Both the position numbers and the translations under genes were made by a program. Of a DNA stretch of 64,000 nt, positions 23,403 through 58,940 are shown piece by piece (within the stretch, counting starts at the first letter, position 1; each line of letters starts with the position of its first letter). The notes under the pieces are model-generated. The model worked only from the letters and a program-made list of their open reading frames with translations. It was not told the DNA's origin and did not search any database. The stretch comes from Macrostomum lignano (lineage: Eukaryota), in assembly GCA_002269645.1 (NCBI GenBank), contig NIVC01003637.1:1-64000 (forward strand), given 5' to 3'.

Positions 23403-23873
23403 ATTGCTTTGGATTTTCAACTTAATCTATTTATTTTGACTGCAAACTACTTTTGCACCGTTGCTTATTTAAGTAGTATGTGTTGATTTTTTAAGACGCA
23501 AGTTTGTTAATTTTTTTATAGAAACTGTCATTCACTCTATTTAGTAAGTATTTTAGTATATAAGATTTTTGTCTGCAAAAAATAATTAAAAAATATACTA
23601 GCTGTTCGGTAGAAGCTGCTGATTTTTATTGCCTTGAGTAGATCATTAAAACCTGAAAAATTTGTGTCATTTACTCGAACTTTGTTTAGCAGCCTCCTTG
23701 GGAGCAGCAATCCTTGGTCCCTCACTCTACCAAGGCATCGGGGGAAAAAATTAAAGTTCACATTTAAAATAACTTGCATGCTTATAAGATACTTTGTTAG
23801 TTTTGTACCAATAAAGATGTTTAAAAAATAAAGGCATTACCATTAGCATCGGGCTTTCCAGCATCCATATCCT

Positions 23874-24837
23874 TGAGCATGGAATCTCAGCAACTCCCCA
23901 TTGAGCCATGGCATCTCAGCAACTCCCCATTGAGCCATGGCATCTCAGCAACTCCCCATTGAGCCATGGCATCTCAGCAACTCCCCATTGAGCCATGGCA
24001 TCTCAGCAACTCCCCATTGAGCCATGGCATCTCAGCAACTCCCCATTGAGCCATGGCATCTCAGCAACTCCCCATTGAGCCATGGCATCTCAGCAACTCC
24101 CCATTGAGCCATGGCATCTCAGCAACTCCCCTTAAGCCTTGTCATCTCAGCAACTCCCCTTAAGCCTTGTCATCTCAGCAACTCCCCCTTGAGCCATGGC
24201 ATCTCAGCAACTCCCCATTGAGCCATGGCATCTCAGCAACTCCCTATTGAGCCATGGCATCTCAGCAACTCCCCATTGAGCCATGGCATCTCAGCAACTC
24301 CCCATTGAGCCATGGCATCTCAGCAACTCCCCATTGAGCCATGGCATCTCAGCAACTCCCCATTGAGCCATGGCATCTCAGCAACTCCCCATTGAGCCAT
24401 GGCATCTCAGCAACCCCCTATTGAGCCATGGCATCTCAGCAACTCCCCATTGAGCCATGGCATCTCAGCAACTCTCCATTGAGCCATGGCATCTCAGCAA
24501 CTCCCCATTGAGCCATGGCATCTCAGCAACTCCCCTTAAGCCTTGTCATCTCAGCAACTCCCCTTAAGCCTTGTCATCTCAGCAACTCCCCCTTGAGCCA
24601 TGGCATCTCAGCAACTCCCCCATTGAGCCATGGCATCTCAGCAACTCCCCCATTGAGCCAAGGCATCTCAGAAACTCCCCATTGAGCCATGGCATCTCAG
24701 CAACTCCCCCATTGAGCCATGGCATCTCAGCAACTCCCCATTGAGCCATGGCATCTCAGCAACTCCCCCATTGAGCCATGGCATCTCAGCAACTCCCCCA
24801 TTGAGCCATGGCATCTCAGCAACTCCCCCATGGCATC
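23874..24837 (+). repeat. 29-30 bp minisatellite (CATGGCATCTCAGCAACTCCCCATTGAGC)n
   Basis: About 30 or more tandem units; the same family occurs inverted at 41877-43609. Confidence 0.95.
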
Positions 24838-25313
24838 CCAGCTTTGAGTAAAAACCACTTCCTTTATGTAAATATACACGTACATATACATGTCGATGCT
24901 GCAGAAACTCATGTGTGTAGTTCTACGAGTATTTACTAGAATCTCTTGTACTGCCAAGCCCTTGACGTTCAGCTCCAAAACTTCCCGTGAGAAAGCAGCA
25001 GACCTGAGATCTGTGAGCCGCTTCTCACTGCTGCCACTACTGAGGGCTCTGCGGCCTCACTTTGGCGGCCTCAGCAACTCGGCTGCTGTCACGATCGCAG
25101 CTCCACAGTGAAACGTGACTCGGACAGCCACATCGGACCTGCAACTGCAGCAGAACCTCAGCTGAAGCCGCGCCACTCAATCTGGCGAGATCCCACGCCC
25201 TCCACGCATTCCAGCAGCAGCTCGGGTGGATAAATGCCGACTCGAAATGTCTGCTCAAATTTGCAACTCAAAGTGGCCGCTCCAATCAGCGACTCCCATT
25301 GGCGACTCAGCAA

Positions 25314-26107
25314 ATGCAGCACCGCCAGCTACTCGCTGCCTGCCTCGCCGCAGCCACTGCAGCTCTGCTGCTCACCGGCGCCTCTGCTCAGTGTCCCGGA
25401 CACGGCTCTGCACCTGACAGAGGTGTCACCCCACCTGTGGACGCCTCGTGGCTGCGTTCGATTTCAGGAGGGGCCTGCACAACCTGGTGGACCCGCGCGC
25501 CTTTGCCATCGAGGACCAGTTTGGCGTGGAGAGGTCGGCAGAGGACGGGGCCTGCTTCAAGGTGAATTCAAGTGCCAGATACAGGGAGTTCTACAATGTC
25601 GGAGCTCCCATGGCATTCAATGAGTCGATCTGGAACTCAGCAGAGTGAACCATGTACTTCAGGCTGACTCGGAGCAGCGGCAGCTGGGTTCGTTTTCTGT
25701 CGGTTCCGAGCGACCATTTGCGCCCGGATGGGGTGCTAAACGTTTATGCTGTCATTGATCAATATTCTGGAAACAGGTTTAGATTTTATGTTGGGCAACA
25801 TGACCTTCGAAGCCGGCATTATAACGAGCACCACTTCTACGGATCGGGCTGTGCTGGCAGCTGGTGCGACATTCGGCTGGCAATGAAGAATCACATTTTG
25901 GATTCTCCTGCCATCGGATGGCCGCTGAGTTCTGATTATCAGAAGTTTACTGATTTTGTTAATGAACTGGGACTGCAGCAGCTGCAGATTGGAAATCTTT
26001 ATCCATCTTCTGGTTCCCAGCGGCTCTGCGTGAGGTGCTTCGGGGTCGCCCGCAGGCAGCTGAGCGCCCATGAGGTGCGGCAGGCGATGTCGGCTTTCTG
26101 CCCCTGA
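25314..26107 (+). pseudogene. Lectin-family paralog A: signal peptide joined directly to the C-terminal LamG-like domain (both CTL domains absent); one frameshift (~25445) and an in-frame TGA (25646-25648)
   Basis: MQHRQLLAACLAAATAALLLTGASAQCPGHG, then AAFDFRRGLHNL...WCDIRLA...RCFGVARRQLSAHEVRQAMSAFCP, homologous to 39729-41402. Confidence 0.8.
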
Positions 26108-26864
26108 GACTGCGGCTGCAAGCAGTGGGCCTGGCAGCCACTAAAATGCATTACGTAGTCGTTTTGTCTTCTACCGAAAGTCTGTCGGTTTGTCTGTCTG
26201 TCCAGTCTGGTTTCTGTCTGTTTGTCTTGACAAATTAAATGGTGCCTCAGAGCCAAGTTGGTGACGCTTCCTGAGTGTCCCGAATGTACGAAATACAATA
26301 TACGATCTTAGCTGCATATACAGCATTGCAAAAACTTTGATTGCCCCCCAGCAATGATACCGGTGTAGCTGATGAAGGTTAAAGGAAGCTACGCACACTT
26401 GTGACCTTGGCCGTTGTTCAAAATGTCTATGGTAATTTACGTTAAGGTAATGACATTCAAGCAATGACCGGAAAACGAACGCTGAGATAAAAAAATAGTC
26501 TATGGTTGTAAGTGTGGACTTCGCCCCCACACCCCCATTCGCCCTTGCCACTCGGATCCTGATGGTCAAATTGAATAATGAAGCTAGCTGGAAGTGGCGA
26601 TAGCCGCTCATTTCTATGGCCATTACCATGAATTCTCACTTCCTGACAACCCCCCATTAACTTAAACCCTCGCTTCGTATTACATGTAGCTGCATTAATT
26701 GAATTGTCTAAGGCCGAAACAGACGGAAATGTAAATGACGATGCTTACACTTCATGTCAATGGCCAGTCCCATAGAATGCATTGGTCAATCAGTTGTCTA
26801 TGGCTAAAATTGGCGGCCACTGGCCATTTTTCGCCCAGATGAGGTGCTGCCACCAAATTAATAC

Positions 26865-26990
26865 CTTTATGCTGGCATTAATAAAACTTCTGGGGACAGG
26901 TTTGAATTTTATGTTGGGGAACATGACCTTGCGATCCAACATTATAACGAGCACTACTTCGATGAATTTGGCTGTGACGCTTCCGACTGG
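26865..26990 (+). pseudogene. Isolated fragment B of the lectin-family LamG-like variable segment
   Basis: LYAGINKTSGDRFEFYVGEHDLAIQHYNEHYFDEFGCDASDW aligns with paralog A VYAVIDQYSGNRFRFYVGQHDLRSRHYNEHHFYGSGCAGSW. Confidence 0.75.
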
Positions 26991-27519
26991 CGCGCAGGGT
27001 CCGCCCTCTTGTGGGATGTCGGCTCCTCCGCGGGATTGAGTTGCCAGCACTCTCCAGAGGCGGCAGAAGGGGCGGCTTTCGCACTCCTGGCCGTTCCTCC
27101 GCTTTGCGCTTGAGAAAAGCTTTGTAGCGAGCAATGCTACGGGCCTTCTTTTTAGAGGTCTGAGGTCCGCCGTCCTGTTGTCCAGCCACTTCGGTATTGT
27201 CCTGAGTGGCGACAGAAGCTGACTAAGAGTCACCGGAGGTCCCGGTGTTGCGAATGTCCGGCTGGGCGGCGATACCAACCGCAGTTGGCGCTCCAGCAGC
27301 CTCGGACGTGTTGCAAGTAAATGAATACTCCATGAGTCGCTGAAAGGTGAATGGGGACTAGAGGTGAGAAGCTGCTGGGCCGAAACCCCAAACCCAACAG
27401 CCAGCCAAAATATAGCGACCCGGGGTGCTTAGGCCCTTACCGGCCCGACCGCTAGCAACCGAGAAACTACCCGGCTAAGAGCCCGGCTTGGAGAGACCAT
27501 ACGCTCGTAGGCCGAACCA

Positions 27520-28300
27520 AAGGAACATCAGCGCGGTACTACACTGGTAGGCTGTCCGCATCCTGTTAAGGTCAGAGGGTGATACCTGTTCTTCAGAGCC
27601 GTGGCCAGAGGTACCTGATACGCACAGGTTCACTTCCGGACGGAGCCCGTACCCAAATCGGCCAAGACAGAAGCCAAGGCCACGGATGGGGTGCAGGTGT
27701 AGGATACAATTCCGATAATTCTGTGCTGTGGTCGGTCTGCACTTTGCGGCCGATCTGGTCTGATGGCGTTGGTTGCTCTTTGTGGCAAAGTCATCCAGTT
27801 CATGCCAGGTCTTCATGTTTGGATTTTCCAGCTTTTTGCTTTCTTCTGATTGAAGAACGAGCTTAGCCAGACCATATTCAAGCTCTCTTGCCATGTTCGA
27901 AGTTACTCACCTTGTTAGTTTGTCCAGCCGATACCATGTTGGCCTGCGCTCGTGAAGAGGGTCGCTGCTCCTCGAACGATGTTTGAGGTCCAGTCACCTT
28001 GCACCCGAAATCACACATTGGAAAGCGCGCGTTTCTGTGGGTGCATTTTTATGCCTCCTGTGTTCCACAGGTGCCATGCAGTCTCATTTAGTAAGATTAG
28101 TAGGTTTCCTTATTCTCATGGTGAAACACTGATGCCGGTGCCTTGCAAGGTCACATCCCAGCTCGATGACGCTTTCTTTACTATCTGTCCGAGTCTCGCT
28201 GAGCCCAGGTTTGCCCGCTGCACGTTCCACATCGCGATTCTCACTTTCTTCTGGTTCCAGATTCTTTGCGCAGCTTCTAAACGTTGTTTGTTCCTTTATT
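27520..28300 (-). pseudogene. Degenerate LINE apurinic-like endonuclease remnant (RTE-like)
   Basis: Minus-strand pieces KKVRIAMWNVQR (motif I), WLSSFFNQKK and NPNMKTWHELDDF resemble the TWxHP...WHxLDY motif region; frameshifted. Confidence 0.5.
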
Positions 28301-28401
28301 TTACGGTGTTTCTCTCTCTCTTCGCGTTTCGACGCCTGTTCCTTGCCCTTCTCTGCTCACTGGTTCCCGGTCCAGGTTTGCAATTTGGTTCGTATTCGCG
28401 A

Positions 28402-28655
28402 TCCGCTAACTCTTCCGCTAACTCTTCCGCTAACTCTTCCGCTAACTCTTCCGCTAACTCTTCCGCTAACTCTTCCGCTAACTCTTCCGCTAACTCTTCC
28501 GCTAACTCTTCCGCTAACTCTTCCGCTAACTCTTCCGCTAACTCTTCCGCTAACTCTTCCGCTAACTCTTCCGCTAACTCTTCCGCTAACTCTTCCGCTA
28601 ACTCTTCCGCTAACTCTTCCGCTAACTCTTCCGCTAACTCTTCCGCTAACTCTTC
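28402..28655. repeat. 12-bp tandem repeat (TCCGCTAACTCT)n, ~21 perfect copies
   Basis: Direct inspection; the minus strand reads (EELA)n in one frame. Confidence 0.95.
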
Positions 28656-30038
28656 AGTCTTCCGTGTGCCGCGTCGCTGCCACCCGATAGGCTTTCCTCT
28701 AACCCTAAGCCGTCGGTCATATCGTCCTCTGATGTCGGTGTGTCGTCTTCGCCAGAAGGGGCTCTGTGGCTATCGTCCAGCTGGTCGTTAAGTACTTCTC
28801 TTCTTCTGTGTGAGTTGATCGGTCTTCCAGGACAATGTCAGAAATTTCGTTAATCCTGTCCTGTCCCGTCCTTAATAGCGTCTCTGCCTTTCGCACAAAT
28901 TTTCCAGTTCTCTTATTAGACTTCGACAGACAATTTCGCGCGGTAGCTAATAAGTGAGCAGATTCAGCAGGTATCAAGTAGGTTGAGCAATGGCTAGAGT
29001 TACGATCATGCGCTTCCGGCAGGTTGCAGTGATGAGCCATTGTACAATAATTCTTAATAAGCAATAAAATTCTACTCTTTCCGGCTAAAGCAATTTCAAT
29101 AATATCAGTCGGCACATATGGCTGGATTTGGCAGGCCTTTTTGCCTCAATTTTAGCGGACAGCACCTGGGATCAAGTCAACAGGTCATTTGCTGTGCCAC
29201 ATGACAAGGCTGGTTCCTATAGCCAAGCCACAACGTCTCAAACATCTGGTTCTGTTGACGCCAGCACCCTACTAGCATTGCGTGATGCTTTCTAGTCCGC
29301 TCTCTGTCACGCTGTAGGCTCGTATGACTGCCTAGCAGACATCGCAGTCCAGAGTTTTCATCGTGGACTCCGTCTGACGAGGCAACCAGACAGCGGTTAA
29401 AATTAATATCGCCTGCATATGCACCGATCCGTCTAGCTTAACTACGCAGTTTATTATTTCTATTTTTATAAATATTTTTATAGCTCGTAAATTAACGAAC
29501 ACAATAATCAACACATTGCACTGCAACTCAGCCTTCCGCCACACGTCGTCCTCCAGCTCTGGTTCTTAGCCGCTTATGTCTTCTTGGCTAGATGGTTGGA
29601 AGACACTGCCGATCTTCCATGAAATCCTTCCTGAGACTCCGGAAAGTCAGGGAACAAGTATAGGCCACAAACAAGTGCGCTGTTACGTTACCAATAGGTC
29701 TTGTGTAACTTTAAAACTCTTCTGTTCGACCACAAGTTTGTTCGTCCGCCAGCTGGAAATTTATTCTTCTTTTTACCCGTTTGTATTTATATTGAAAAAC
29801 TGTCTCCTGCACAATGAACTCCTGCTAAACTGCAGTCTTGCTGTCCTTGCGCTGATCGGCTGATTGTTGATGTGCATACTGCTGAGATCGTTGATGCTGC
29901 TGCTGGTAGTGGGTTGAGCCGAGCTACGTCGGGTGCCTTAGACAAAGGCTAGCGTCCACAACGTTGGGGCCTACTTCTTAACTTTAAGTCCCCTCGCTCC
30001 AGGCTCACATTGGGCCCTCTCGTTGCTGTCCAGCCTCG

Positions 30039-30643
30039 GCTAGGTGACACGACCAAGTGACGCGACCAGGTGACACGACCAAGTGACGCGACCAGGTGAC
30101 ACGACCAAGTGACGCGACCAGGTGACACGACCAAGTGACGCGACCAGGTGACACGACCAAGTGACGCGACCAGGTGACACGACCAAGTGACGCGACCAGG
30201 TGACACGACCAAGTGACGCGACCAGGTGACACGACCAAGTGACGCGACCAGGTGACACGACCAAGTGACGCGACCAGGTGACACGACCAAGTGACGCGAC
30301 CAGGTGACACGACCAAGTGACGCGACCAGGTGACACGACCAAGTGACGCGACCAGGTGACACGACCAAGTGACGCGACCAGGTGACACGACCAAGTGACG
30401 CGACCAGGTGACACGACCAAGTGACGCGACCAGGTGACACGACCAAGTGACGCGACCAGGTGACACGACCAAGTGACGCGACCAGGTGACACGACCAAGT
30501 GACGCGACCAGGTGACACGACCAAGTGACGCGACCAGGTGACACGACCAAGTGACGCGACCAGGTGACACGATCAAGTGACGCGACCAGGTGACACGACC
30601 AGGTACGACACGACCAGGTGACACGACCGTCGTGTCACCTAGC
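30039..30643. repeat. 26-bp minisatellite (GGTGACACGACCAAGTGACGCGACCA)n enclosed by 15-bp terminal inverted repeats
   Basis: GCTAGGTGACACGAC at 30039-30053 and GTCGTGTCACCTAGC at 30629-30643; the unit is a dimer of 13-bp subunits. Confidence 0.85.
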
Positions 30644-31935
30644 TCCCTAGCCTATCCCCGTTCCTATACTTATGAGCAATTTCTTATGTCTCATAATTTA
30701 TATTGAGATCGAATAGTAGACACGTTATTTCAGTTTCAAGTTTTGTAACTAAATTGAAATTATAATATCGATACTTTCTCAAACAAAATTAAAGAATAAA
30801 ACTTGTTTCAATTTTTTAAAAATTCTTCAACTAGTAAAAGTTTCGAAAAAAATTAACTGAAAGAATTTCAAAATGCTTTTCAAGCCAAAGAGCTGCAGAT
30901 AATTGAAAATTAAGGTTTTATGTATCGAAGTTACGAGCTATTTTCTATTTTATTTTTTAACTAAATTAATTCAGTGGAGAAAAGCCCTGGTCGGTTAAAC
31001 TGATTGATTGAACTGATGGCTGTATTAAAGCTGTACTTTTGTGCCCAATTTTTAACTGATCGCAATGATCAATTTAACTGAGGGATGGGATGCCCCTCAG
31101 CCCAATGAAGCCCAATGATCTTGGGATCTCGTGCTTGGGTTTCAAAAATAGCTGAAGTATATTAATTAAATTGTTCTCAAATCTCTCCGAAATTGATCTT
31201 GCAAGGCGTAAATTTAAATAATTGCAAAAATTTAAATTAAACTCACAACAATTATTACAAACAATTTGTCATTGGTTAGTTGTCTATATGATTTCTACCT
31301 ATATGATTCTATATGATATTGAACGAAGCTTAGTTTACTTATACATGTAGGACTTTATAACGGCATTTTCTATGCCTGAAGCCCTCCCGCTTGGAAAATG
31401 TTGTGCCGATGCCTTATACTCGTAGTTAAAACCATCCCAGAAGTCGGAAAAAATTAGTTAAATTGAAATTTACGAGTTATACCCGAATTTGTCTACTGCT
31501 GCAGTAGCGCGCAAAGATTTTTTAGCAGTAGTGTGACCCAAGTAGGAAATTCGAGATTTAGGAATTTAGTAAGATTCAGTAAGTTACGAGCATAGTTTAT
31601 TTTTTAATTATAAATACGTTTATTAATTTCCCGGAAAAGTTCACTTCTGGTGGTTGCATCTGCACGAAATTTTACCTGCAGCAACTGCAGTCTGTAATCA
31701 CTTCTCAACATAACTTCCTGTGGCGCCTTGCTGCAGCGCTGCGTCGGAGGAAAATGGCCGCCATCATTTTGCCGATGCTGCGATTGCGACGAAACTTGAG
31801 AGGAGCATCTTCGTCGTTGATAACCCACTGCCGACTCTGCTCCTTACTTACTTACTTACTACTGACGGGGGGCGCAGGCGCCGCGAATAGGCCGCGAGGC
31901 CCCTATCGCAACCCCAAGGTAAAAGAGCACAAGGA

Positions 31936-36813
<4,878 letters not shown>

Positions 36814-37996
36814 TTATCCCAGGATTGCTCCCAGGCGAGGCTCCGGCAGGCCCCCGGTCCACACTCTGCAAGATCAGGGGGCGGGAGGCCGGCTGCGGGC
36901 TTGGGACACAGGCGCCAGGTCGAGTTGACAGCCGACGCCCGAGCCCTCCCCCACAAGAGCGGCCCTCGAGAACCCGTGTGGTACCAGTTGCAACTAAGGG
37001 CTGTCGATGGGTAGTTGGCGCTTAGCCAGCAGCCAACTACTTAGCAGCCACCTGCCCCGCAAAAAAGCAGCAGGGGGGATCCGTCCCCCACCAGCAGACC
37101 AAGACGAGGAAGCTAGCCGCTTCCACGCCAGGCCAGAACGAAAAGGAGGGGGAAGAGCCTCCTCGAAAAACGAAAAGCTGGCGGATGTCACAGAGTCCCT
37201 CGGTTTAAGTTGCCGTTTGCCCCCCGACTCTGCTCCTTGGTCTCATGGGTCGTAGAAGTAGACCGAAGGTTCTTTGCCAGTGAGGATGTTATCCACCAAC
37301 TTTCAGCGGCCTCCGTCAAACCTTGGCCGCCATGAGGTCGGCGAGCTCAACGCGGGCTTGCATCTGGTCAGGGCTGAGCTGGTGGGGCACCCAGCGAGCG
37401 GACAGCTTCGTCATTTCAAGGTGCTGGTGCAGGATCTTAATGATGGTGGAATCCGACACCCCGACGAGCTGCTCCAACCAGCCAATCGCCACTCACCGAT
37501 CTTCGTCTAAATGGCGTCGAACAGCAGCAACGACTCCGTCGGACACAGTCGAACTCGGCCGCCAATCACGAGGATCGTCGTCCAGAGTGGCCGAGCCGCA
37601 GCGGAAGCGTGCAAACCACTCATACAGCATCGACTGGGATGGCGCTTGATCCTGAAGAGCCTCACGCAGCGTCTGGAGTCATGTGGCTGCAGAGCTGCCC
37701 AGCCGAAACTGGACCGGGATTGCCACTCGCCTGTCGCGGTCAGTCATCTGTGGCAGCAGGGCGGCAAGTTTTCGGCCAAACTTTGGACATTGCAGCGCAT
37801 CGTTGCGACCGATTGAGCTGAAATTTTACAAGCGGACGTTGAACACTCAACTCCAACTGCTGGTTAAGTTTCGTTTGATTTGCGCATTTTTAAGCTGCAT
37901 TTTCCGGGAACTTAATAAGCACCGCTCGTAGCCTTAGAAAGAGTCGGAATACAGAATAGAATGATCTTTCCTTTCCTTTCCTTGCATTTCCTTAAT

Positions 37997-38260
37997 CATA
38001 TCAACAAGCACGACTCCAACGGCAGCTGGTCCGACATTCAACTGGCAATAAAGAACCGCATTTTGGATTCTCCTGCCATCGGACGGTCGCTGGGCGTTCA
38101 ATATCGGAACTGGACTGATGGGACTCATGAAGTGGGACTGCAGCAGCTGCAGCTCGGAAATTATTATTTACTTCTGCGTGAGGTGCTTCGGAGTCACCCG
38201 CAGGCAGCTGACGGCCGTGAGGTGCGGCAAGCGATGTCGGCCTTCTGCCCCCGAGTATAA
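37997..38260 (+). pseudogene. Fragment C: 3' part of a lectin-family LamG-like domain
   Basis: GSWSDIQLAIKNRILDSPAIG...VGLQQLQLG...(C)VRCFGVTRRQL...EVRQAMSAFCP. Confidence 0.8.
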
Positions 38261-38488
38261 GGCTAGAATTTGCGTCACTGAGCATCCGGATGCAGTACCG
38301 GCTGCAACCGCGATAACAGCATCCGGTTGAGCAGCCTCGCAGCGCAGGACTGAAGGCAGAGGCCTCTGTGCTCATTCAGGATTGTGGTACCCGGCTTCTT
38401 TGGAACGTGACGACCCAAACCAATTGGAAACTTGGCGGTTTATGCCGCTATACACTGTGCACCTTGTGTGAGCGTGTGTATGAGCACA

Positions 38489-38800
38489 GGGGTTATAGCC
38501 TAATGGTTCGATCGTTGGAATCACGACGGAAAGGTCGGGGGTTCGATTCTCGACACACTCGGAACAATTTGTGTCCTTGAGCAAGTTGAGCAAGACACTT
38601 AACTCTGCATTGCTTCAGTTAGTCCAGCTGTAAAATGGGTGCCAGCATTAGCTGGGGTAATTGAGGGTGAGTGTGGCGCCCCCCCCCCTCAGTCCTTGGA
38701 CTGAACAGCCGTACGCAGCCTGCAGATGCGCTGCGCAATGGCTGCGGCTGAGCTGTCGGTTGCACAACTGCCTAGCAATGCCCACATTTGCATATGTGCT
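38489..38800 (+). mobile_element. tRNA-derived CORE-type SINE (3' end approximate)
   Basis: A box TAGCCTAATGG and B box GTTCGATTC, followed by TGTGTCCTTGAGCAAG...ACACTTAAC...CAGCTGTAAAATGGG, which resembles the MIR/CORE domain. Confidence 0.7.
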
Positions 38801-39728
38801 GTGTACGAGTACCCTATAACCGACTGCTCCGCTCTCCTGGTGTTATGACGCTCTGGCAAAGAAAGAACGCCTTGCCTTAGCCTAACAAGTTTCCCATAAA
38901 GAATTACTTAAGCGGGCGGCTTACCAGAGGGGGGCAGAAGGCTCTACTGGCTAAGCCCTCAACCAAGCCACAGGGCCAGCCAATCAGAACCCCGCCCGGG
39001 GCAGGGTGCAGCACCCGGCACGCACGCCAACCCCCCCAGCCACCCCCAAAGTGCACCGTGCCCTGCCAAACCAAGGGCACATGCACTACACCTGTATGCA
39101 GCTAGTAAGATCGTATACTTGGCAACAGTCAAAAGTTCCAACCCTCCAAGCGAAATAAAAAATTCCTCACTTATTGCGACAACTTTTCACCCACAATTCA
39201 ACTCTCAAGTTACGCAACTGAGTCACCGCGAGGAAGGGAAAATTAATAGAATCAATAGCTCGTACTATTGATGAACGCCAGTCGCACAAAGTCATAACGC
39301 GCTTAGTAACGCGTGTGGGATCCCCTCGCACGCAGAAAGTCCTAGGGAAGCTGCTGCCAAGCGTTTCAATGGCATGACGGAGCTCCGCAACATGCTGCGG
39401 TGGATTCTCTTATCGACTGCTGCGTTTTAGGAAGTCCCAGACATGCTCGATGGGATTCATGTGTGGGGACCATTAAGCAGACCCAAGCCGACCCCAGTGG
39501 CAGTAAGCTTTGCGCCTGCCGTAAGTTGCGTCACTCGCAATAAGTGAAGCTTATGACAGTTGCTGGCAATACATTGTATTTGATTAATCGATAACTGATT
39601 GGGTACATTCAAAGACTTTGGAGAAACACCACCAAGGCATGATAGCCATATAACCACCATCAAACTGAACTGATTCGTCAAGCCATACCGTAAGAATGCG
39701 TCAAAATCTTCAGCATAGCCGCAGCTCT

Positions 39729-41402
39729 TTAGGGGCAGAAGGTCGACATCGCCTGACGCACTTCGTCGGAGCTCAGCCGCCTGCGGGCGACTCCGAAGCA
39801 CCTCAGGCAGAGTTTCCGAGCTTCAGAATAAAACGGCGACCCGAATCCAACACGGAGCTGCTGCAGTCCCAATACATCCGCATCGAATGTCGAGTTCCAA
39901 TATTGAACTCTCAGCGGCTCTCTGATGGCAGGAGAATCCAAAATGCCAGCCTTGATTGCCAGCCGAATGTCGCACCAGTTGGCAGCACAGCCCGATCCGT
40001 TGAACTCGTGGTTGTTGCTATGCACGGTGAAATGCGTTGAGTTCCCGAGGTCGCGTTGCAGAACATTTAAAACGAACTGCTCAGCACTGGAGGAATAGAG
40101 CTCAGCACGGAGACTTGAGTACGAATTCGGATCGGAGTGGTTGCTGCGCACAGACAGAAACTCGACGCCACTTTTATTGCCTACGGTAAGCCTAAAGTAC
40201 ATTGTGTACTCTGATGTACTGAGAATCGACTCATTGAATGCCACGGGAGCTCCGACATTGTAGAACTCCCTGTATCTGGCACTTGAATTCACCTTGAAGC
40301 AGGCCCCGTGCTCTGCCGACCTCTCCACGCCAAACTGGTCCTCGATGGCGAAGGTGCGCGGGTCCAACAGGTTGTGCAGGCCCCTCCTGAAATCGAACGC
40401 AGCCACGAGGCCGTCCACCTGCGGCGGCGGCGACGCAGACGGCGGTGGCGGGGAGTTGCCGTCCGACGCCTCCGTCTTGCACACGAACCTGTGCCTGCTG
40501 TGGCACCTGTCGCTGCGCAGTCGACCAGCTGACAGCGTGACGCAGTTCACAGTCCAGTCCGCACTGTCCGGGTGTCCAGTCTCCCATGCGGGCAGCTTGT
40601 TGTCGTGTTTCCCTGAGAAATCCGTCCACTGGTAGCAGAGCTCGCGACCCGCACTGTCAGGGAAGCAGGGGTTCAGCTTGATGAGGCCGAGCCACACCGA
40701 GTCGAGCAGCTCTGCCGACTCGCAGCTGTCGATTCCGAAGCTGAGCTTGTTCACAAAGTCCAGCTCAGACTGGGTGAGCACCGACGCCAGCTGCGACGAG
40801 TTTCCCTGGCAGTAGAAGTTGGCCTCGTTGAAGTTGGCCTCAAACTGCGGCATCACGTAGCACTGCTCGTCGTGCAGCCACCAGCCGCTGGGACATCGGC
40901 CCTTCGACCGCCACCACAAGTCGACGAGACTGCTGGAGTTGGCGCTCAACTTGCACACAAACGGGTGCCGCTCGTGATACAGCGAGTTGAGCCACCACTC
41001 ACCGTCACTTCGGATCAGAGGCTTGTGAACGCTGTCCAGCTGAGAGAAGTTGTGTCTCTCGAAGCTCCCTACGCCGCCGCCGTCCGTCCACCTGTAGCTT
41101 GTAGGGTCGGCCAGACGGTCGAGGTCGGTGCCGAACAAACCGATCCAGGCGTCTCTGCAGTGAGACAGTCGGCCTACCAGTCGGTTCTCTTGCTCACTTT
41201 AAATGGACGCGAGGTGAGCCCGGTGAGACAGACACGTCTGCTCGGCCTGAAACCAGTAGTTCGGCTCGCTGAACCACTTGTAGCATGAGTGAGCTCGGTG
41301 TGTCCAGCCGTGTCCGGGACACTGAGCAGAGGCGGCGCCGGTGAGCAGCAGAGCTGCAGTGGCTGCGGCGAGGCAGGCAGCGAGTAGCTGGCGGTGCTGC
41401 AT
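39729..41402 (-). pseudogene. Lectin-family paralog D: intronless signal peptide + 2 C-type lectin domains + Pro linker + ~225-aa LamG/ConA-like domain; single in-frame TAA at 41199-41201
   Basis: CPGHGWTHRAHSCYKWF...LASI*SEQENRLV...AWIGL...YRWTDG...FVCK; CPSGWWLHDEQCY...VWLGL...NCV...C...FVCK; ORFs 41199-41417 and 39729-41138 are in the same frame. Confidence 0.85.
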
Positions 41403-41876
41403 CTGCTGAGTCGCCAATGGGAGTCGCTGATTGGAGCGGCCACTTTGAGTTGCAAATTTGAGCAGGCATTGCGAGTCGGCATTTATCCACTCGCGAGCTG
41501 CTGCTGGAATGCGTGGAGGGCGTGGAATCTCGCCAGATTGAGTGGCGCGGCCTCAGCTGAGGTTCTGCTGCAGTTGCAGGTCTGATGTGGCTGTCCAAGT
41601 CACGTTTCACTGTGGAGCTGCGATCGTGACAGCAGCCGAGTTGCTGAGGCCGCCAGAGTGAGGCCGCAGAGCCCTCAGTAGTGGCAGCCGTGTGAGAAGC
41701 GGCTCACAGATCTCAGGTCTGCTGCTTTCTCACGGGAAGTTTTGGAGCTGAACGTCACGGGCTTGAGAGTGCAGGAGATTCTAGTACATAAAGCTACACA
41801 TGTTTCCTTTTACATGCCAGTTTTTTGCTGCATCAACATGTACGAGCGTATAAAGACTGCGGCTTCTATGCAAAGC

Positions 41877-43609
41877 TCAGATGCCATGGCTCAATGGGGG
41901 AGTTGCTGAGATGCCAAGGCTCAATGGGGAGTTGCTGAGATGCCATGGCTCAAGGGGGAAGTTGCTGAGATGCCATGGCTCAATGGGGGAGTTGCTGAGA
42001 TGCCATGGCTCAAGGGGGGAGTTGCTGAGATGCCATGGCTCAATGGGGAGTTGTTGAGATGCCATGGCTCAATGGGGAGTTGCTGAGATGCCATGGCTCA
42101 ATGGGGAGTTGCTGAGATGCCATGGCTCAGTGGGGAGTTGCTGAGATGCCATGGCTCAATGGGGGAGTTGCTGAGATGCCCAATTGCTCAATGGGGGAGT
42201 TGCTGAGATGCCATGGCTCAAGGGGGGAGTTGCTGAGATGCCATGGCTCAATTGGGGGGGGGTTGCTGAGATGCCATGGCTCAATGAAGGGTTGCTGAGA
42301 TGCCAAGGCTCAATGGGGGAGTTGCTGAGATGCCAAGGCTCAATGGGGAGTTGCTGAGATGCCATGGCTCAAGGGGGGAGTTGCTGAGATGCCATGGCTC
42401 AATGGGGGAGTTGCTGAGATGCCATGGCTCAAGGGGGGAGTTGCTGAGATGCCATGGCTCAATGGGGAGTTGCTGAGATGCCATGGCTCAAGGGGGGAGT
42501 TGCTGAGATGCCATGGCTCAATGGGGAGTTGCTGAGATGCCATGGCTCAATGGGGAGTTGCTGAGATGCCATGGCTCAATGAAGGGTTGCTGAGATGCCA
42601 AGGCTCAATGGGGAGTTGCTGAGATGCCATGGCTCAAGGGGGGGGTTTCTGAGATGCCATGGCTCAATGGGGGAGTTGCTGAGATGCCATGGCTCAAGGG
42701 GGGAGTTGCTGAGATGCCATGGCTCAATGGGGAGTTGCTGAGATGCCATGGCTCAATGGGGAGTTGCTGAGATGCCATGGCTCAATGGGGAGTTGCTGAG
42801 ATGCCATGGCTCAATGGGGGTTGCTGAGATGCCATGGCTCAATGGGGAGTTGCTGAGATGCCATGGCTCAATGGGGGGTTGCTGAGATGCCATGGCTCAA
42901 TGGGGAGTTGCTGAGATGCCAAGGCTCAATGGGGAGTTGCTGAGATGCCATGGCTCAAGGGGGGAGTTGCTGAGATGCCATGGCTCAATGGGGGGGGGTT
43001 TCTGAGATGCCATGGCTCAATGGGGAGTTGCTGAGATGCCATGGCTCAAGGGGGGAGTTGCTGAGATGCCATGGCTCAATGGGGAGTTGCTGAGATGCCA
43101 TGGCTCAAGGGGGAGTTGCTGAGATGCCATGGCTCAATGGGGAGTTGCTGAGATGCCAAGGCTCAATGGGGAGTTGCTGAGATGCCATGGCTCAAGGGGG
43201 GAGTTGCTGAGATGCCATGGCTCAATGGGGGGGGTTTCTGAGATGCCATGGCTCAATGAAGGGTTGCTGAGATGCCATGGCTCAATGGGGGGGGTTTCTG
43301 AGATGCCATGGCTCAATGGGGGGGGTTTCTGAGATGCCATGGCTCAATGAAGGGTTGCTGAGATGCCATGGCTCAATGGGGGAGTTGCTGAGATGCCATG
43401 GCTCAATGGGGGGGTTTCTGAGATGCCATGGCTCAATGAAGGGTTGCTGAGATGCCATGGCTCAATGGGGGAGTTGCTGAGATGCCATGGCTCAATGAAG
43501 GGTTGCTGAGATGCCATGGCTCAATGGGGGGGAGTTGCTGAGATGCCATGGCTCAATGGGGGGGGTTTCTGAGATGCCATGGCTCAATTGTGGAGTTGCT
43601 GAGATGCCA
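41877..43609 (-). repeat. 29-31 bp minisatellite, reverse complement of the 23874-24837 family
   Basis: (GCTCAATGGGGAGTTGCTGAGATGCCATG)n. Confidence 0.95.
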
Positions 43610-43634: not shown

Positions 43635-43697
43635 CCAGGCGTCTCTGCAGTGAGACAGTCGGCCTACCAGTCGGTTCTCTGGCTCACTTTGGATTGA
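43635..43697 (-). pseudogene. Fragment E: piece of CTL domain 1 of the lectin family
   Basis: Near-identical to 41145-41207; reads SIQSEPENRLVGRLSHCRDAW. Confidence 0.8.
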
Positions 43698-44239
43698 CTC
43701 GGAAGAGAGATTCAAAAGTAATCTTTTCAGCGATTTTTTTGTTAACGACCTATTCAGAACATGTAGTAATCAAGTAAACTTTTCTTTGCCTGCGCTGCAG
43801 CTAATAAAGACACGCCAGCGTCAGGGGCCTCTGTTCCTACCTGGACTGGGCAACAAAATCCGGATGCAGAACAGCACAAAAAGTGTCCTTGGCTCAGTTT
43901 CAACTTTTCATCCAATTTTTTTATGACAGGCAATAGAGAAAGTGGCGCAGCTGAGGGGGGCATGCGGTGTCTCGGAAATGTCATCGAGAGCTGCTGTGCA
44001 GTGTGCAGGCGAAATCTTGGCTTCGGCACGGGAACACGCGGCTTTAGAGAAATTTCGAATTTGAAATGGCAAGCGGCCGGTGCGAGTCCCGCCGCGCACT
44101 CGATCCGGGCTGGCTGATGAAGAAGCGAAGAGGCTGGCCGCCCCCGCATGGAAGTTGGGCCGAGGAGCACTAATTATAGCTGCGATTTGGACTGCCCGCC
44201 TCTCCTTCAGCTAATGAGTTATTTTAATAAAATTTCTGA

Positions 44240-44510
44240 GCCAAAAAGCCTCCCAGATCCCCAGTTGCTGGGCCACGAGCCTCCCAAATTCTCTGTTGCT
44301 GAGCCACCAGCCTCCCAGATCCTCAGTTGCTGGGCCACCAGTCTCCCAGATCCTCAGTTGCTGGGCCAGCCTCCCAGATCCTCAGTTGCTGAGCCAGTCT
44401 CCCAGATCCTCAGTTGCTGAGCCAGTCTCCCAGATCCTCAGTTGCTGAGCCAGTCTCCCAGATCCTCAGTTGCTGGGCCACCAGCCTCCCAGATCCTCAC
44501 TTGCTGGGAC
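44240..44510 (+). repeat. Short minisatellite (CCTCCCAGATCCTCAGTTGCTGGGCCA...)n upstream of the MRLC gene
   Basis: About 9 degenerate ~27-31 bp units. Confidence 0.8.
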
Positions 44511-44800
44511 TTTATGAGTCAGCTTCCACTCCAGATTCTGCCACATCATAGCTCGCCTTGGCCCCATCGATTTGACGCCCGCAATCCAGCAGCAGCTGTT
44601 CCGCCGTCAGCCAATCCGGATGAAATCCGAGCCCGCGAAGCAGCCACTCGTCGGATTAATGTCTTCTGAGCCGCGGATAAAGGTTGGCGCAACAGACCGG
44701 GAGCTGCCGGATCCTCGATTGCTTTCTACTGGCAGACAGCGGCGGATCAGCACAGGACGCGACTTCTATTTCGAGTTGGTAGCAAAACAGTTACCTTGCA

Positions 44801-44836
44801 ATGGCCGATGATGTAAGTGATCTATCTATCTATCTC

Positions 44837-44887
<51 letters not shown>

Positions 44888-44888
44888 G

Positions 44889-44919
<31 letters not shown>

Positions 44920-44920
44920 G

Positions 44921-45004
<84 letters not shown>

Positions 45005-45005
45005 C

Positions 45006-45088
<83 letters not shown>

Positions 45089-45089
45089 C

Positions 45090-45130
<41 letters not shown>

Positions 45131-45131
45131 C

Positions 45132-45171
<40 letters not shown>

Positions 45172-46403
45172 GACTATCTATCTATCTATCTATCTACCTA
45201 TCTATCTATCTGTCTGCCCGCAGAAGCAAGAAGGCAAGCGCGCCCAGCGGGCCACCTCAAACGTTTTCGCCGCATTTTCGCAGACTCAGGTGCAGGAATT
45301 CAAGGAGGTGAGGCAGACTTAAAGAGCCGTACAGCAACTTGCCACCTCTGATTAGAACTGAGAATTGTTAAAAAGCTTCACCCACGACGATTGCAGGCCT
45401 TCACGATGATTGACCAGAATCGGGACGGCTTCATCGATGTGGAGGATCTGAAGGACATGTATGCCTCACTGGGTGAGCACCGGCGCTGCGACGAGAGATG
45501 AGACGCTAGATGAGAGATGAGATAAGAGATGAGAGATGACAGATAAGAGATGAAAGATGAGATAAGAGATGAGAGACGAGAGATGAGACGCGAGATGAGA
45601 GATTAGATGCGAGATGAGAGATGGGAGAGATGAAAGATACGAGTTGCGAGATGAGATGTGAGATGAGATGAGAGCTGAGATCTTGAGATGCGAGACTGAA
45701 GTCTACAATAGAACTCTACATGTATAATCGATATAACCTCCCGGATTGACCATCATAAGAAGACAATCTCTGGTCAGGCTTGCGAAACCATATAGCGAAC
45801 TCTGTGTTCAAATCTTCCCAATAATTGAAATGTCCGCCAAAACCCCCGCTCTCCCACAGGCCGGCAGCCCACCGACAAGGAGCTCCAGGAGATGCTCAAA
45901 GAGTCTCCCGGCCCGTTGAATTTCACCGCCTTCCTGCAGATCTTCGGCGAGCGGCTGACCGGCTCGGATCCCGAGGACGCCCTGCGAAACGCCTTCAAGA
46001 TGTTCGACGACGCGAACACAGGCATGCTGGACGAGGAATAGTGAGTGGCTCGGCTTGTTTTAATTAATTTTGCTCTTCTGAACAAATTTAGGCATCAATA
46101 TTCTTTACTTACCTACTGCCAGTAGTGTAGTTTGAAAATTAAAAAAACGCAATAATAAAATAACCCGCGGAAAATACAAGTTTAAAACAGAATTCCATCA
46201 GCTTCGCAAACAATGGAAGTTCTGCTTCAACCCCGTTAATTTTTTTTTGCAATTCCAGCTTCAAAGACCTGATGAAGAACATGGGCGACAACTTCAGCGA
46301 AGAGGAGATCCGCCAGACCTGGAAGGAGGCGCCAATCTCGGCGGGCAAGCTGGACTACAACAAGTTCACCAACCTCATCAAGCGCGGCAAGGATGACGAG
46401 TAA
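44801..46403 (+). CDS. MRLC: Myosin regulatory light chain (EF-hand); exons 44801-44812, 45224-45307, 45397-45472, 45860-46040, 46259-46403
   Basis: MADD|[28 protein letters not shown]|[26 protein letters not shown]|[49 protein letters not shown]...EY|[25 protein letters not shown]...[16 protein letters not shown]; all introns GT-AG and phase-compatible. Confidence 0.95.
44820..45210. repeat. (TATC)n microsatellite filling MRLC intron 1
   Basis: Direct inspection. Confidence 0.95.
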
Positions 46404-46828
46404 TTCTTGGAAAGTTCGGAAACGGGCAACACCGGAGACTGCCATATTTTATAGCGTTTTATACTTCGTTATTTCGATTTTACCGTAAACCTTTGGCCAA
46501 TAATCTTTTCCTACTTTATCAAATTTGTTGACTGCTTCTTGAGGAACTACATGTACGAGCTGTATTAACGACCGATTTCTTGGAAATCAAACCCGGAAAA
46601 ACTGGAATTAGGTCAAGCTTTACTTGACTAAATGCAGAACAACTTTCAAACTTAGGGTGAAGACCAAAGAATGTTTAGGCTAATGGACTGATTGATCAAG
46701 ACAAACCTGCTTTTAACAAAATTATGCACTCTCTAAAAATAAAACTTTACCCCCGGCTGCCGATGCGCAGTTTCTTAATCCGCAATTCGTGTTTTTAAAC
46801 AGGTCTTAGTTTTTGCGCTGCTGTCCAC

Positions 46829-46892
<64 letters not shown>
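46829..46892. repeat. (CTGT)n microsatellite
   Basis: Direct inspection. Confidence 0.9.
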
Positions 46893-47294
46893 CATCTATC
46901 CCTACCCAACAAAGATTATTTATGCCTGGGCGACAACCTGGACGGCAGGCTCGGATAATCAAATCAGCCATCTTGTGGTCACCGGCCAGCCAGGCAGAGT
47001 GCAGCAGTGGCAAGATGAGGCCGCTCAGCATCCTCGCATAGGCTATTAATTTCATCCTCCGGCCCTCTGAGCCTGACTCGATCCCAATTTTCTATCACAC
47101 GCTGTCATCGAGTTTGAGTCAAGTTTGTTATGGGTGCATCTGCCGTGCAGCAAACGTTTGCCTTTGCTCAAAGCAGTGGCCTTTCATTGCGTGCACAAGT
47201 GATTAATTAGACTTGAAAATTCGTTTCCAAATTGAACCTGTAGAAATTGTCTCTATGAGGGTATCAAGATCTCAAGAATTGCGTCAGGATATCT

Positions 47295-49787
47295 ATAGTT
47301 GGGTTTCAGGATGTCTATAGTTGGGTGTCAGGTCTATAGTTGGGTTTCAGGATGTCTATAGTTGGGTGTCAGGTCTATAGTTGGGTTTCAGGATGTCTAT
47401 AGTTGGGTGTCAGGTCTATAGTTGGGTTTCTGGATGTCTTTATGTATAGTTGGGTATCCGGATATCTATATTTGATTGTCAGGATGTCTATAGTCGATCG
47501 TGTCAGGATGTCTATAGTTGGATTTCAGGTCTATAGTTGGGTTTCAGGATGTCTATAGTTGGGTGTCAGGTCTATAGTTGGGTTTCAGGATGTCTATAGT
47601 TGGGTGTCAGGTCTATAGTTGGGTGTCAGGTCTATAGTTGGGTTTCTGGATGTCTTTATGTATAGTTGGGTATCCGGATATCTATATTTGATTGTCAGGA
47701 CGTCTATAGTTGGGTTTCAGGATGTCTATAGTTGAGTGTCAGCATGTCTATAGTTGAGTGTCAGGATGTCTATAGTTGAGAGTCAGGATATCTATATTTG
47801 ATTGTCAGGATGTCTATAGTTGGGTTTCAGGATGTCTATAGTTGAGTGTCAGGATGTCTATAGTTGAGTGTCAGAATGTCTATATTGAGTGTCAGGATGT
47901 CTATAGTTGAGTGTCAGGATGTCTATAGTTGAGTGTCAGAATGTCTATAGTTGAGTGTCAGGATGTCTTTATTGAGTGTCAGAATGTCTATATTGAGTGT
48001 CAGCATGTCTATAGTTGAGTGTCAGGATGTCTATAGTTGAGTGTCAGCATGTCTATAGTTGAGTGTCAGGATATCTATAGTTGAGTGACAGGATGTCTAT
48101 AGTTGAGTGTCAGGATGTCTATGTTGAGTGTCAGGATGTCTATAGTTGAGTGTCAGGATGTCTATAGTTGAGAGTCAGGATATCTATATTTGATTGTCAG
48201 GATGTCTATATTGAGTGTCAGGATGTCTATAGTTGAGTGTCAGAATGTCTATAGTTGAGTGTCAGAATGTCTATATTGAGTGTCAGGATGTCTATAGTTG
48301 AGTGTCAGGATGTCTATAGTTGAGTGTCAGAATGTCTATATTGAGTGTCAGGATGTCTATAGTTGAGTGTCAGGATGTCTATGTTGAGTGACAGGATGTC
48401 TATAGTTGAGTGTCAGGATGTCTATGTTGAGTGTCAGAATGTCTATATTGAGTGTCAGCATGTCTATAGTTGAGTGTCAGGATGTCTATAGTTGAGTGTC
48501 AGCATGTCTATAGTTGAGTGTCAGGATATCTATAGTTGAGTGACAGGATGTCTATAGTTGAGTGTCAGGATGTCTATAGTTGAGTGTCAGGATGTCTATG
48601 TTGAGTGTCAGGATGTCTATAGTTGAGTGTCAGGATGTCTATAGTTGAGTGACAGGATGTCTATAGTTGAGTGTCAGGATGTCTATGTTGAGTGTCAGGA
48701 TGTCTATAGTTGAGTGTCAGGATGTCTATAGTTGAGTGTCAGGATGTCTATAGTTGAGTGTCAGGATGTCTATGTTGAGTGTCAGGATGTCTAGTTGAGA
48801 GTCAGGATGTCTATAGTTGAGAGTCAGAATGTCTAGTTGAGTGTCAGGATGTCTATAGTTGAGTGTCAGGATGTCTATAGTTGAGTGACAGGATGTCTAT
48901 AGTTGAGTGTCAGCATGTCTATAGTTGAGTGTCCGGATGTCTATAGTTGAGTGTCAGCATGTCTATAGTTGAGTGTCAGGATATCTATAGTTGAGTGACA
49001 GGATGTCTATAGTTGAGTGTCAGGATGTCTATGTTGAGTGTCAGGATGTCTATAGTTGAGTGTCAGGATGTCTATAGTTGAGAGTCAGGATATCTATATT
49101 TGATTGTCAGGATGTCTATATTGAGTGTCAGGATGTCTATAGTTGAGTGTCAGAATGTCTATAGTTGAGTGTCAGAATGTCTATATTGAGTGTCAGCATG
49201 TCTATAGTTGAGTGTCAGGATGTCTATAGTTGAGTGTCAGAATGTCTATATTGAGTGTCAGGATGTCTATAGTTGAGTGTCAGGATGTCTTTATTGAGTG
49301 TCAGAATGTCTATATTGAGTGTCAGCATGTCTATAGTTGAGTGTCAGGATGTCTATAGTTGAGTGTCAGCATGTCTATAGTTGAGTGTCAGGATATCTAT
49401 AGTTGAGTGACAGGATGTCTATAGTTGAGTGTCAGGATGTCTATAGTTGAGTGTCAGGATGTCTATGTTGAGTGTCAGGATGTCTATAGTTGACTGTCAG
49501 GATGTCTATAGTTGAGTGACAGGATGTCTATAGTTGAGTGTCAGGATGTCTATGTTGAGTGTCAGGATGTCTATAGTTGACTGTCAGGATGTCTATAGTT
49601 GAGTGACAGGATGTCTATAGTTGAGTGACAGGATGTCTATAGTTGAGTGTCAGGATGTCTATGTTGAGTGTCAGGATGTCTAGTTGAGTGTCAGGATGTC
49701 TATAGTTGAGAGTCAGGATGTCTAGTTGAGTGTCAGGATGTCTATAGTTGAGTGTCAGGATGTCTATATTGAGTGTCAGGATGTCTA
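47295..49787. repeat. 20-22 bp minisatellite (GTCAGGATGTCTATAGTTGAGT)n, ~2.5 kb
   Basis: Direct inspection. Confidence 0.95.
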
Positions 49788-50384
49788 TAAATGTATATCT
49801 AGGAGATTGAAATTGAGAGCTACCTGAAAACATCAGTATGGGACATGCATATTGAGTTGCAAATCTATTGGCCGGTTGCAGTCATTGGCCAATGAAATAT
49901 TGATTAAAATAGCCTTACATCTGCATGTATAGATAAAGTATTCATAATGGCACGGGTGACACTGCATCAGTAAAGCGGCACTATTCAGCCATTTGAAACT
50001 CAAATCATAACTAATAAACCCGATGGCTATGCAAGAAGTGGCACTCATGATGGAGCCGCTGGACTATTGGACCAACAGGCGACTGAAGGGCACCGCATCA
50101 GCCAGCGACAACAGCGATGACTGCGCGGCCGGTGCTTCATCATCGGTGCCAATCGATGCTCAAGGATGCTGCAGAGACGACAGGAGCGGCAGAAGGATCG
50201 TCTGCTCAGCTCTGGTGCTGCTGCTCCTGCTCACTCTGCTGCTGCTGTTACTGCTGCAGAGGTCAGTAGAGGCCCGAATTAGTGGCGGCAACATCAAAGG
50301 AGGAGAAGGAACAGCGACTGTGACGATGAGTGCCTGCAATGAGACTGCGGACTGCTCTTGACCTGGGAATGGGGCCAACTGAGG

Positions 50385-52914: not shown

Positions 52915-53450
52915 CCAGATTACAGAAACCCAAAACCAGATTACAGAATCGCCAATCCAGATTACAGAATCGCCACTCCAGATTACAGAATCGCCACTCC
53001 AGATTACAGAATCGTCACTTCAGATTACAGAATCGTCACTTCAGATTACAGAATCGTCACTCCAGATTACAGAATCGCCACTCCAGATTACAGAATCGTC
53101 ACTACAGATTACAGAATCGTCACTCTAGATTACAGAATCGTCACTTCAGATTACAGAATCGTCACTTCAGATTACAGAATCGTCACTTCAGATTACAGAA
53201 TCGTCACTCCAGATTACAGAATCGTCACTACAGATTACAGAATCGTCACTACAGATTACAGAATCGTCACTCCAGATTACAGAATCGTCACTCCAGGTTA
53301 CAGAATCGCCAATCCAGATTACAGAATCGTCACTCCAGGTTACAGAATCGTCACTTCAGATTACAGAATCGTCACTTCAGATTACAGAATCGCCACTCCA
53401 GGTTACAGAATCGTCCATCCAGGTTACAGAATCGTCCATCCAGGTTACAG
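52915..53450. repeat. 21-bp minisatellite (AGATTACAGAATCGTCACTCC)n
   Basis: Direct inspection. Confidence 0.93.
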
Positions 53451-53484
53451 AAACGCCACCGCATACTAAGCTACAAACTCTCAC

Positions 53485-56838: not shown

Positions 56839-56892
56839 CTGACAATTAAAGAAAAAATGAGCTTATTCGTATGCGGATAGAGCAGATAGTGT

Positions 56893-58798: not shown

Positions 58799-58940
<142 letters not shown>

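Follow-up and report, generated by a model that had tools for sequence, protein, structure and literature searches.

What produces a gene family in which nearly identical stretches alternate with segments that barely resemble one another is the question raised by a 64,000-nucleotide stretch of the Macrostomum lignano genome (positions 1 to 64,000 of contig NIVC01003637.1, assembly GCA_002269645.1; hereafter the window). Apart from one retrotransposon, the gene-like sequence between 24.9 and 43.7 kb of the window consists of five pieces (A, B, C, D and F) of one family encoding secreted proteins that combine a pair of C-type-lectin-like domains with another domain at the C-terminus, and an original prediction made from this DNA had ascribed their conserved framework and variable segments to diversifying selection or to segmental gene conversion. 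The analysis described here favors the latter: the framework/variable pattern is probably a mosaic of ancestries rather than of selective pressures, and the window is likely to hold a decaying, repeat-flanked inverted pair (A and D), with fragments B, C, and F, of a small Macrostomum-specific family whose mosaic structure results from partial ectopic conversion or recombination.

The family, as found, comprises five long copies (A, D, E, G, H) and three fragments (B, C, F), with E, G, and H being further single-exon copies at unrelated loci of the same assembly. The long copies, and the variable blocks HV1 and HV2 as delimited in A and D, are as follows:

Copy D, 39729..41402, minus strand: single-exon full-length coding sequence of 557 codons, read from the open reading frame (ORF)
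Copy D HV1, 39999..40187, minus strand: variable block of ~63 codons
Copy D HV2, 39813..39920, minus strand: variable block of ~36 codons, holding a conserved LGLQQL island
Copy A, 25314..26107, plus strand: internally deleted pseudogene
Copy A HV1, 25667-25840, plus strand
Copy A HV2, 25919-26023, plus strand
Copy E, L001:9449-11293: open from the family start codon, with a stop 40 codons before the conserved end
Copy G, L002:10037-11839: intact
Copy H, L003:10121-12064: intact, 647-codon ORF

Framework and Variable Blocks Along One Exon

In all copies that were read the coding sequence occupies a single exon of ~1.9 kb, and comparison of A with D bears out the succession of similar and dissimilar segments that had been described for these two copies. 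Specifically, the upstream region and signal peptide (24930-25407 in A, 41790-41306 in D) are 95.3% identical over 485 bp, and the first ~190 nt of the C-terminal domain show 95-98% nucleotide identity. Identity then falls to 42-52% across HV1 (~180 nt), recovers to 87% in the GSGCA..SPAI block, falls again to 48-60% in HV2, and returns to 80-85% in the shared tail (LC.RCFGVARR...FCP). When HV1 of D is set against the other copies, nucleotide identity is 40-55%. Whichever pair of the D/E/H/A group is compared, the variable blocks fall at the same positions, and all pairs tested show a significant contrast in synonymous divergence between framework and variable blocks (Fisher P = 3e-4 to 1e-7).

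A Probable Mosaic of Ancestries

Synonymous divergence (dS), estimated by the Nei-Gojobori method for copies D, E, G, and H, varies more than 50-fold along this one exon. Over the signal peptide and lectin domains (308-315 codons) it amounts to 0.014-0.025 in all six pairs, G included, and in the first 41 codons of the C-terminal domain it reaches 0.12-0.30. HV1 is saturated or near-saturated, with dS ranging from 0.97 to unmeasurable and a proportion of differing synonymous sites (pS) of 0.54-1.0, and the synonymous contrast between the lectin domains and HV1 yields Fisher P values of 1e-15 to 1e-39. Further downstream, framework 2 gives a dS of 0.11-0.19 within D/E/H and is saturated against G; HV2 gives 0.59-0.86 in the D/E/H group, and the tail 0.23-0.42 within D/E/H and 1.3-1.7 against G. 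Since selection at the protein level cannot shift synonymous sites more than 50-fold within one exon, and a mosaic of ancestries can, this gradient argues against such selection as its source.

The relationships among copies also change along the alignment. In columns 120-210, A and D are 98% identical while E stands at 70%, and in columns 210-270 it is A and E that agree (95-97%) and D that stands at 70%. Across 31 quartet-informative sites of D, A, E, and H the topology switches 7 times where 16 switches are expected (P=8e-5), and within HV1 copy H is first A-like and then D-like. Breakpoints in the C-terminal domain likewise differ from copy to copy, falling after codon ~45 in G, at codons 46-56 in E and at codon ~69 in D, so that several exchanges, rather than one, are needed. 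The GC content of third codon positions (GC3) is 0.78-0.93 in homogenized tracts versus 0.30-0.64 in HV1, and 0.86-0.93 in the tail of D/E/H versus 0.54 in that of the unconverted copy G; such GC3-rich homogenized tracts are what GC-biased gene conversion predicts.

Alignment of the whole units of D, E, G, and H shows 96-100% identity through both lectin domains and a decay inside the C-terminal domain, with homology starting 100-177 bp before the ATG and ending within ~15 bp past the stop codon. Within +/-10 kb, nothing besides the ~2-kb gene unit is common to any two of the four loci (the window, L001, L002, and L003). These unrelated flanks identify the copies as dispersed paralogues, and an origin as homeologues from a recent whole-genome duplication, suggested by the near-identical 5' parts, was rejected for this reason. 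The dS gradient, the topology switches, the GC3 contrast and the flanks thus uphold the part of the original prediction that invoked segmental conversion.

Proposed Mechanism

The mechanism proposed here would begin with dispersed paralogues old enough for their flanks and both variable blocks to be saturated with differences. Exchange between them, by ectopic gene conversion or unequal recombination, would repeatedly overwrite the 5' ~1.4 kb, a tract that runs from the proximal promoter and signal peptide through both lectin domains and the stalk that follows them to the first ~40 codons of the C-terminal domain; it would act less frequently over the framework blocks of the C-terminal domain, and rarely or never across HV1 and HV2. 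Tract ends that vary between copies would leave each with its own patchwork, and the minisatellite of the stalk or the flanking satellites may be what starts or stops the tracts. Conversion would most likely be continuing rather than a single event.

Several points weigh against this mechanism. The sample consists of only five long copies, tract mapping is coarse and the topology test rests on 31 sites; uncertain alignment inside HV1 and HV2 inflates the divergence values obtained for these blocks, and the GC3 contrast could reflect selection on codon usage. The stops and the frameshift of the window copies, being drawn from assembled sequence only and not from reads, could be assembly or haplotype artefacts. 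A single past event that fused one 5' module to several older 3' modules would, moreover, give a similar contrast, but would explain the framework blocks less well.

Alternative Explanations

The pattern had also been attributed to diversifying (positive) selection on a recognition surface; HV1 and HV2 would then be ligand-contact segments that selection has driven apart, in the manner of immune or self/non-self receptors. That the protein is secreted and lectin-like, that the variable blocks recur at fixed positions in all D/E/H/A pairs, and that indels within these blocks leave the reading frame of the intact copies G and H undisturbed all fit such a surface. The dN/dS ratio in HV1 and HV2 is nevertheless 0.4-0.8 wherever it can be computed, dS being too saturated elsewhere in these blocks, and a ratio no higher than 1 was what the original prediction itself had set against selection. 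The saturation of synonymous sites in the variable blocks indicates that their divergence is old, not a protein-level acceleration; compared with G, the framework blocks have diverged as much as the variable ones; and selection cannot account for a dS of 0.02 beside a dS >1 within one exon. There is no evidence for positive selection, of which five saturated sequences could give none, and we regard this explanation as unlikely. A different account holds that one young 5' unit (promoter, lectin domains, stalk) was recently copied, as a one-time occurrence, onto several anciently diverged 3' domains that already existed. This one-off module shuffling would explain the sharp 5'/3' contrast, with its break right after the stalk repeats in every copy, and a 5' dS that is uniformly ~0.02 in all pairs, but it is rendered improbable by the differing breakpoints of G, E, and D given above and by the separate homogenization of framework 2 and the tail within D/E/H/A, which requires several exchanges.

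It could further be argued that the mosaic is biologically meaningless, resulting from plain neutral pseudogene decay or from artefacts in the assembly of a repeat-rich, partly duplicated genome: all window copies are disabled, the region is full of satellites and holds one retrotransposon, and the public M. lignano assembly is known as redundant and difficult (PMC5730564). However, the same block pattern recurs in both intact ORFs and across four loci that lie on three contigs, neutral decay yields uniform divergence rather than blocks, and dN is lower than dS in the C-terminal domain, all of which makes this explanation very unlikely. More speculative still is an extension of the conversion mechanism in which the silent partial copies A, B, and C would act as donor cassettes, their variable blocks being copied, in the germ line or somatically, into expressed members by a logic like that of chicken pseudo-V genes or of proposals for the Sp185/333 genes. 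This would amount to cassette-based diversification of a secreted lectin-like protein in a flatworm, but the chance that it is true appears slight in the extreme.

Copies and Fragments in the Window

The remaining features of the copies and fragments in the window are listed below:

Copy D upstream region common with A, 41403..41790, minus strand: 95-98% identity
Copy D signal peptide, 41402-41325, minus strand: MQHRQLLAACLAAATAALLLTGAASA
Copy D lectin domain 1, ~41321-40950, minus strand
Copy D lectin domain 2, ~40895-40482, minus strand
Copy D linker, 40416-40481, minus strand: short Pro-rich segment NSPPPPSASPPPQ, replacing the PDGGVTSx repeats of other copies
Copy D C-terminal domain, 40418-39732, minus strand: 229 residues
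Copy D stop codon, 39731-39729, minus strand: at the family's usual position
Copy A upstream region, 24930..25313, plus strand: 95-98% identity to that of D
Copy A signal peptide, 25314-25406, plus strand: joined straight to the last stalk repeat and the C-terminal domain
Copy A stop codon, 26105-26107, plus strand: at the family's usual position
Fragment B, 26863..26976, plus strand: 114 bp, from the 3' half of HV1 to the GSGC motif, 80% identical to A
Fragment C, 38021..38255, plus strand: 3' third of the gene (framework 2, HV2, tail)
Fragment F, 43635..43701, minus strand: 67 bp of lectin domain 1, 92-95% identical, abutting satellite
Minisatellite upstream of A, 23873..24828: 29-bp unit, 33 copies, directly upstream of A in the outer part of the left arm of the inverted duplication
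Minisatellite upstream of D, 41875..43609: 29-bp unit in reverse orientation, 58 copies, directly upstream of D in the right arm

Every copy in the window is disabled. Copy D carries an in-frame TAA at codon 68 (41201-41199), within the LASIQSEQENRLV motif of lectin domain 1; copies E, G, and H and fragment F all have CAA at this position, and the TAA is therefore derived. Copy A is without both lectin domains, leaving ~890 bp of D unmatched at the junction 25406/25407, lacks 1 bp at 25442/25443, which puts its C-terminal domain and its signal peptide in different reading frames, and reads TGA at 25646-25648 where E and H read TGG; it is most closely related to the intact H (84% over 731 bp). 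Fragment C has a frameshift in its LC.RCFG motif and no longer ends in a stop codon. It was correctly recognized as a third variant of the variable positions, being 82% identical to H, 77% to A and 70% to D, and the three copies cited by the original prediction (A, D, and C) accordingly prove to be pseudogenes or fragments. On the strength of these lesions, the window copies probably make no functional secreted protein.

Copies A and D are the two arms of an inverted duplication that includes the 29-bp minisatellite, a repeat not found at loci L001-L003. Between the two arms lies a degenerate non-long-terminal-repeat (non-LTR) retrotransposon (31936-36675, minus strand), with ORF1 at 35752-36675 and ORF2 broken into three frames at 35180-35752, 34275-34946, and 31936-34377, the last with RVT_1 and RNase_H domains. 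A perfect 12-bp repeat in 21 copies (28402-28655) and a 26-bp repeat in 22.5 copies (30042-30628) sit between fragment B and the retrotransposon and create long spurious ORFs. The right third of the window (44247-63778) is dense with unrelated minisatellite arrays, and some of its long "ORFs" are translated repeats; examples are a 22-bp unit x116 at 47283-49789, a 30-bp unit x41 at 50379-51605, a 32-bp unit x56 at 54747-56490, a 23-bp unit x73 at 59443-61130, and 29/345-bp units at 62752-63778. Also located there, at 53377-54705 on the minus strand, is a 442-aa ORF that encodes a phosphotyrosine-interaction (PTB/PID) domain (E=9e-13), which is probably an exon of an unrelated neighboring gene.

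Relatives Elsewhere in Macrostomum lignano

The copies of the family are mostly dispersed, lying on separate contigs or 290 kb apart. Copy E is interrupted by a premature stop (L001:~11171-11173) that falls within an E-specific, GGGGATTAG-like insertion of 9 nt in HV2, and because the conserved tail beyond this stop is still intact, the lesion looks recent. The published models for the loci of E, G, and H (390, 604, and 239 residues) under-represent the ORFs found there: the 239-aa GenBank model P0004 sits on the intact 647-codon ORF of H, and the model P0001 begins at an internal Met though its ORF is open from the family's start codon. RNA-seq transcripts underlie the GenBank annotation of the M. 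lignano assembly (PMC5730564), which lends the loci of E, G, and H some support as transcribed genes; this support is weakened by reads mapping to several copies in the identical 5' part. The database entries concerned are as follows:

P0001 (PAA85085) and P0002 (PAA85076): contig NIVC01000349.1
P0003 (UniProt A0A1I8FEQ1): frameshifted chimeric model with an unrelated GTPase-like N-terminus
P0004: contig NIVC01000255.1

For the C-terminal domain, the protein libraries yielded only three relatives, and its only database relatives are M. lignano proteins: word-indexed searches together with an exhaustive profile search of 1.84 billion representative proteins returned no relative of this domain from outside the species. 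The two-lectin core recurs in two more distant M. lignano paralogues with other tails, at 46% identity in P0005 and 36% in P0006. Downstream of P0005, at L004:4686-6080, there are more lectin-domain-like segments (38-49% identity) in another frame, which suggests that a second lectin gene may adjoin P0005. The idea that the family is a retrogene subfamily, raised by its single-exon structure, was dropped because the lectin domains of the distant P0005 likewise lie in a single exon. In the literature that could be searched the family has no description, as had been suspected; the gene identifiers of its relatives gave no match there, and the CLECT domain named in one M. lignano paper belongs to another gene.

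Protein Architecture and the C-Terminal Domain

All three long copies outside the window (E, G, and H) share one layout, consisting of a signal peptide, two C-type-lectin-like domains, a stalk and the C-terminal domain, which supports the view of these genes as a multigene family of secreted, doubly lectin-like proteins with an additional domain. The Pfam model Lectin_C (PF00059) matches two stretches each in H and G with 67.9-70 bits (gathering cut-off 22.6), and matches the 469-aa ORF of D with 41.8 bits (E=2e-10); residues 81-225 of D also match D's own first lectin domain. The only other Pfam match in the family is to Cornifin and is repeat-driven. As read by eye, the WIGL/WLGL motifs and the Cys framework of C-type lectins are present, and the canonical EPN/QPD and WND sugar-binding motifs were found in neither lectin domain; domain 2 has GHPD and LRSD at the expected sites, and domain 1 has neither motif. 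These domains can therefore be described as lectin-like, a description that does not imply sugar binding.

The stalk is built of Thr/Ser/Pro-rich PDGGVTSx repeats of eight residues, encoded by a 24-bp unit, and its length is the most variable feature of the family: D has 0 units, A 1, E 8 (at L001:10396-10590), G 8, and H 14. The stalk is probably O-glycosylated. The presence of a signal peptide and the lack of a hydrophobic tail suggest that the protein is secreted and soluble.

The C-terminal domain is ~225 residues long, contains cysteines and is taken to be disulphide-bonded. Across the old divergence of G and H, six cysteines and the motifs TMYFRL, C..CDI.L.MK, LG.QQL, and LC.RCFG have been retained and dN is lower than dS, and for these reasons it is taken to be a real, constrained protein domain. 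The "LamG-like" label that it had been given finds no support in sequence comparison: none of eight sequences matched Laminin_G_1/2/3, pentraxin or related Pfam models even at E<=10, the domain could be assigned to no Pfam family, and the Pfam search, like a sequence profile search of the PDB, returned chance-level matches only. Two AlphaFold runs on shallow alignments, with mean confidence (pLDDT) of only 38.8 and 47.6, both gave an all-beta structure with a C-terminal helix. The best Foldseek matches of both low-confidence models in the PDB were concanavalin A (ConA)-like jelly rolls (template modeling (TM) score <=0.42, identity 7-15%), including GH16 glucanases, neurexin LNS domains, CBM40, galectins, and the lectin-like subdomain of clostridial neurotoxin binding domains. 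These models offer a weak hint that the domain may be a ConA/LamG-like jelly roll, as regards fold class only, and the resemblance implies no functional or evolutionary link to the proteins matched. The paralogue-specific C-terminal domain would give each paralogue a ligand specificity of its own beside a shared lectin module; by pure inference, the family might act in immunity, self/non-self recognition, mucus or adhesion, feeding, or reproduction.

Comparison with Known Systems

The human fetal gamma-globin genes are the textbook case of partial concerted evolution, in which the 5' part of the genes is homogenized up to a simple-repeat boundary. The likeness to the present family lies in one gene end that is near-identical and another that is older, a transition situated beside a tandem repeat (here the stalk), and GC-rich converted tracts; the present family differs in that its partners are dispersed rather than adjacent, its unconverted part is saturated, and at least four loci are involved. 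By this analogy, classic partial concerted evolution would be the closest evolutionary mechanism.

The Sp185/333 (SpTransformer) genes of the sea urchin are small, clustered, mosaic, and bounded by tandem repeats, and repeat-promoted duplication and gene conversion have been proposed for them (PMC3091723). They resemble the present family in their size of ~2 kb or less, their internal repeats and their patchwork of common and variable sequence, the satellites here flanking A and D and the 24-bp repeat lying inside the gene. Unlike the present family, with its handful of mostly dispersed copies, Sp185/333 genes number more than 40 (~50 by later estimates), are clustered, and are immune-induced. 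With Lectin_C and the repeat-driven Cornifin match as the only Pfam matches, no sequence or domain relation was found to Sp185/333 or to the FREPs of snails. The FREPs combine immunoglobulin superfamily (IgSF) and fibrinogen domains. By its domains the family falls within the C-type-lectin-like domain superfamily and is most readily compared with invertebrate secreted C-type lectin-like proteins (PF00059), with which it shares a tandem Lectin_C pair behind a signal peptide and from which it differs by its non-canonical Ca2+/sugar motifs, read by eye as HPD/RSD in domain 2 and none in domain 1. P0005 and P0006, for their part, are without the ~225-aa C-terminal domain of the present family.

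Significance

Ranging from a dS of ~0.02 to saturation within a ~1.9-kb exon across dispersed loci, the family would offer a compact example of partial concerted evolution. It illustrates that a pattern of conserved framework and hypervariable segments can arise without evidence of positive selection, which is a caution for scans aimed at immune receptors, and it reveals that the public gene models of this lectin family are mostly wrong. For Macrostomum itself, the analysis defines an undescribed and apparently genus-restricted family of secreted proteins whose C-terminal domain is an orphan. RNA interference (RNAi), in situ hybridization, and transgenesis are routine in the model animal M. 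lignano, and the function of the family is therefore experimentally approachable.

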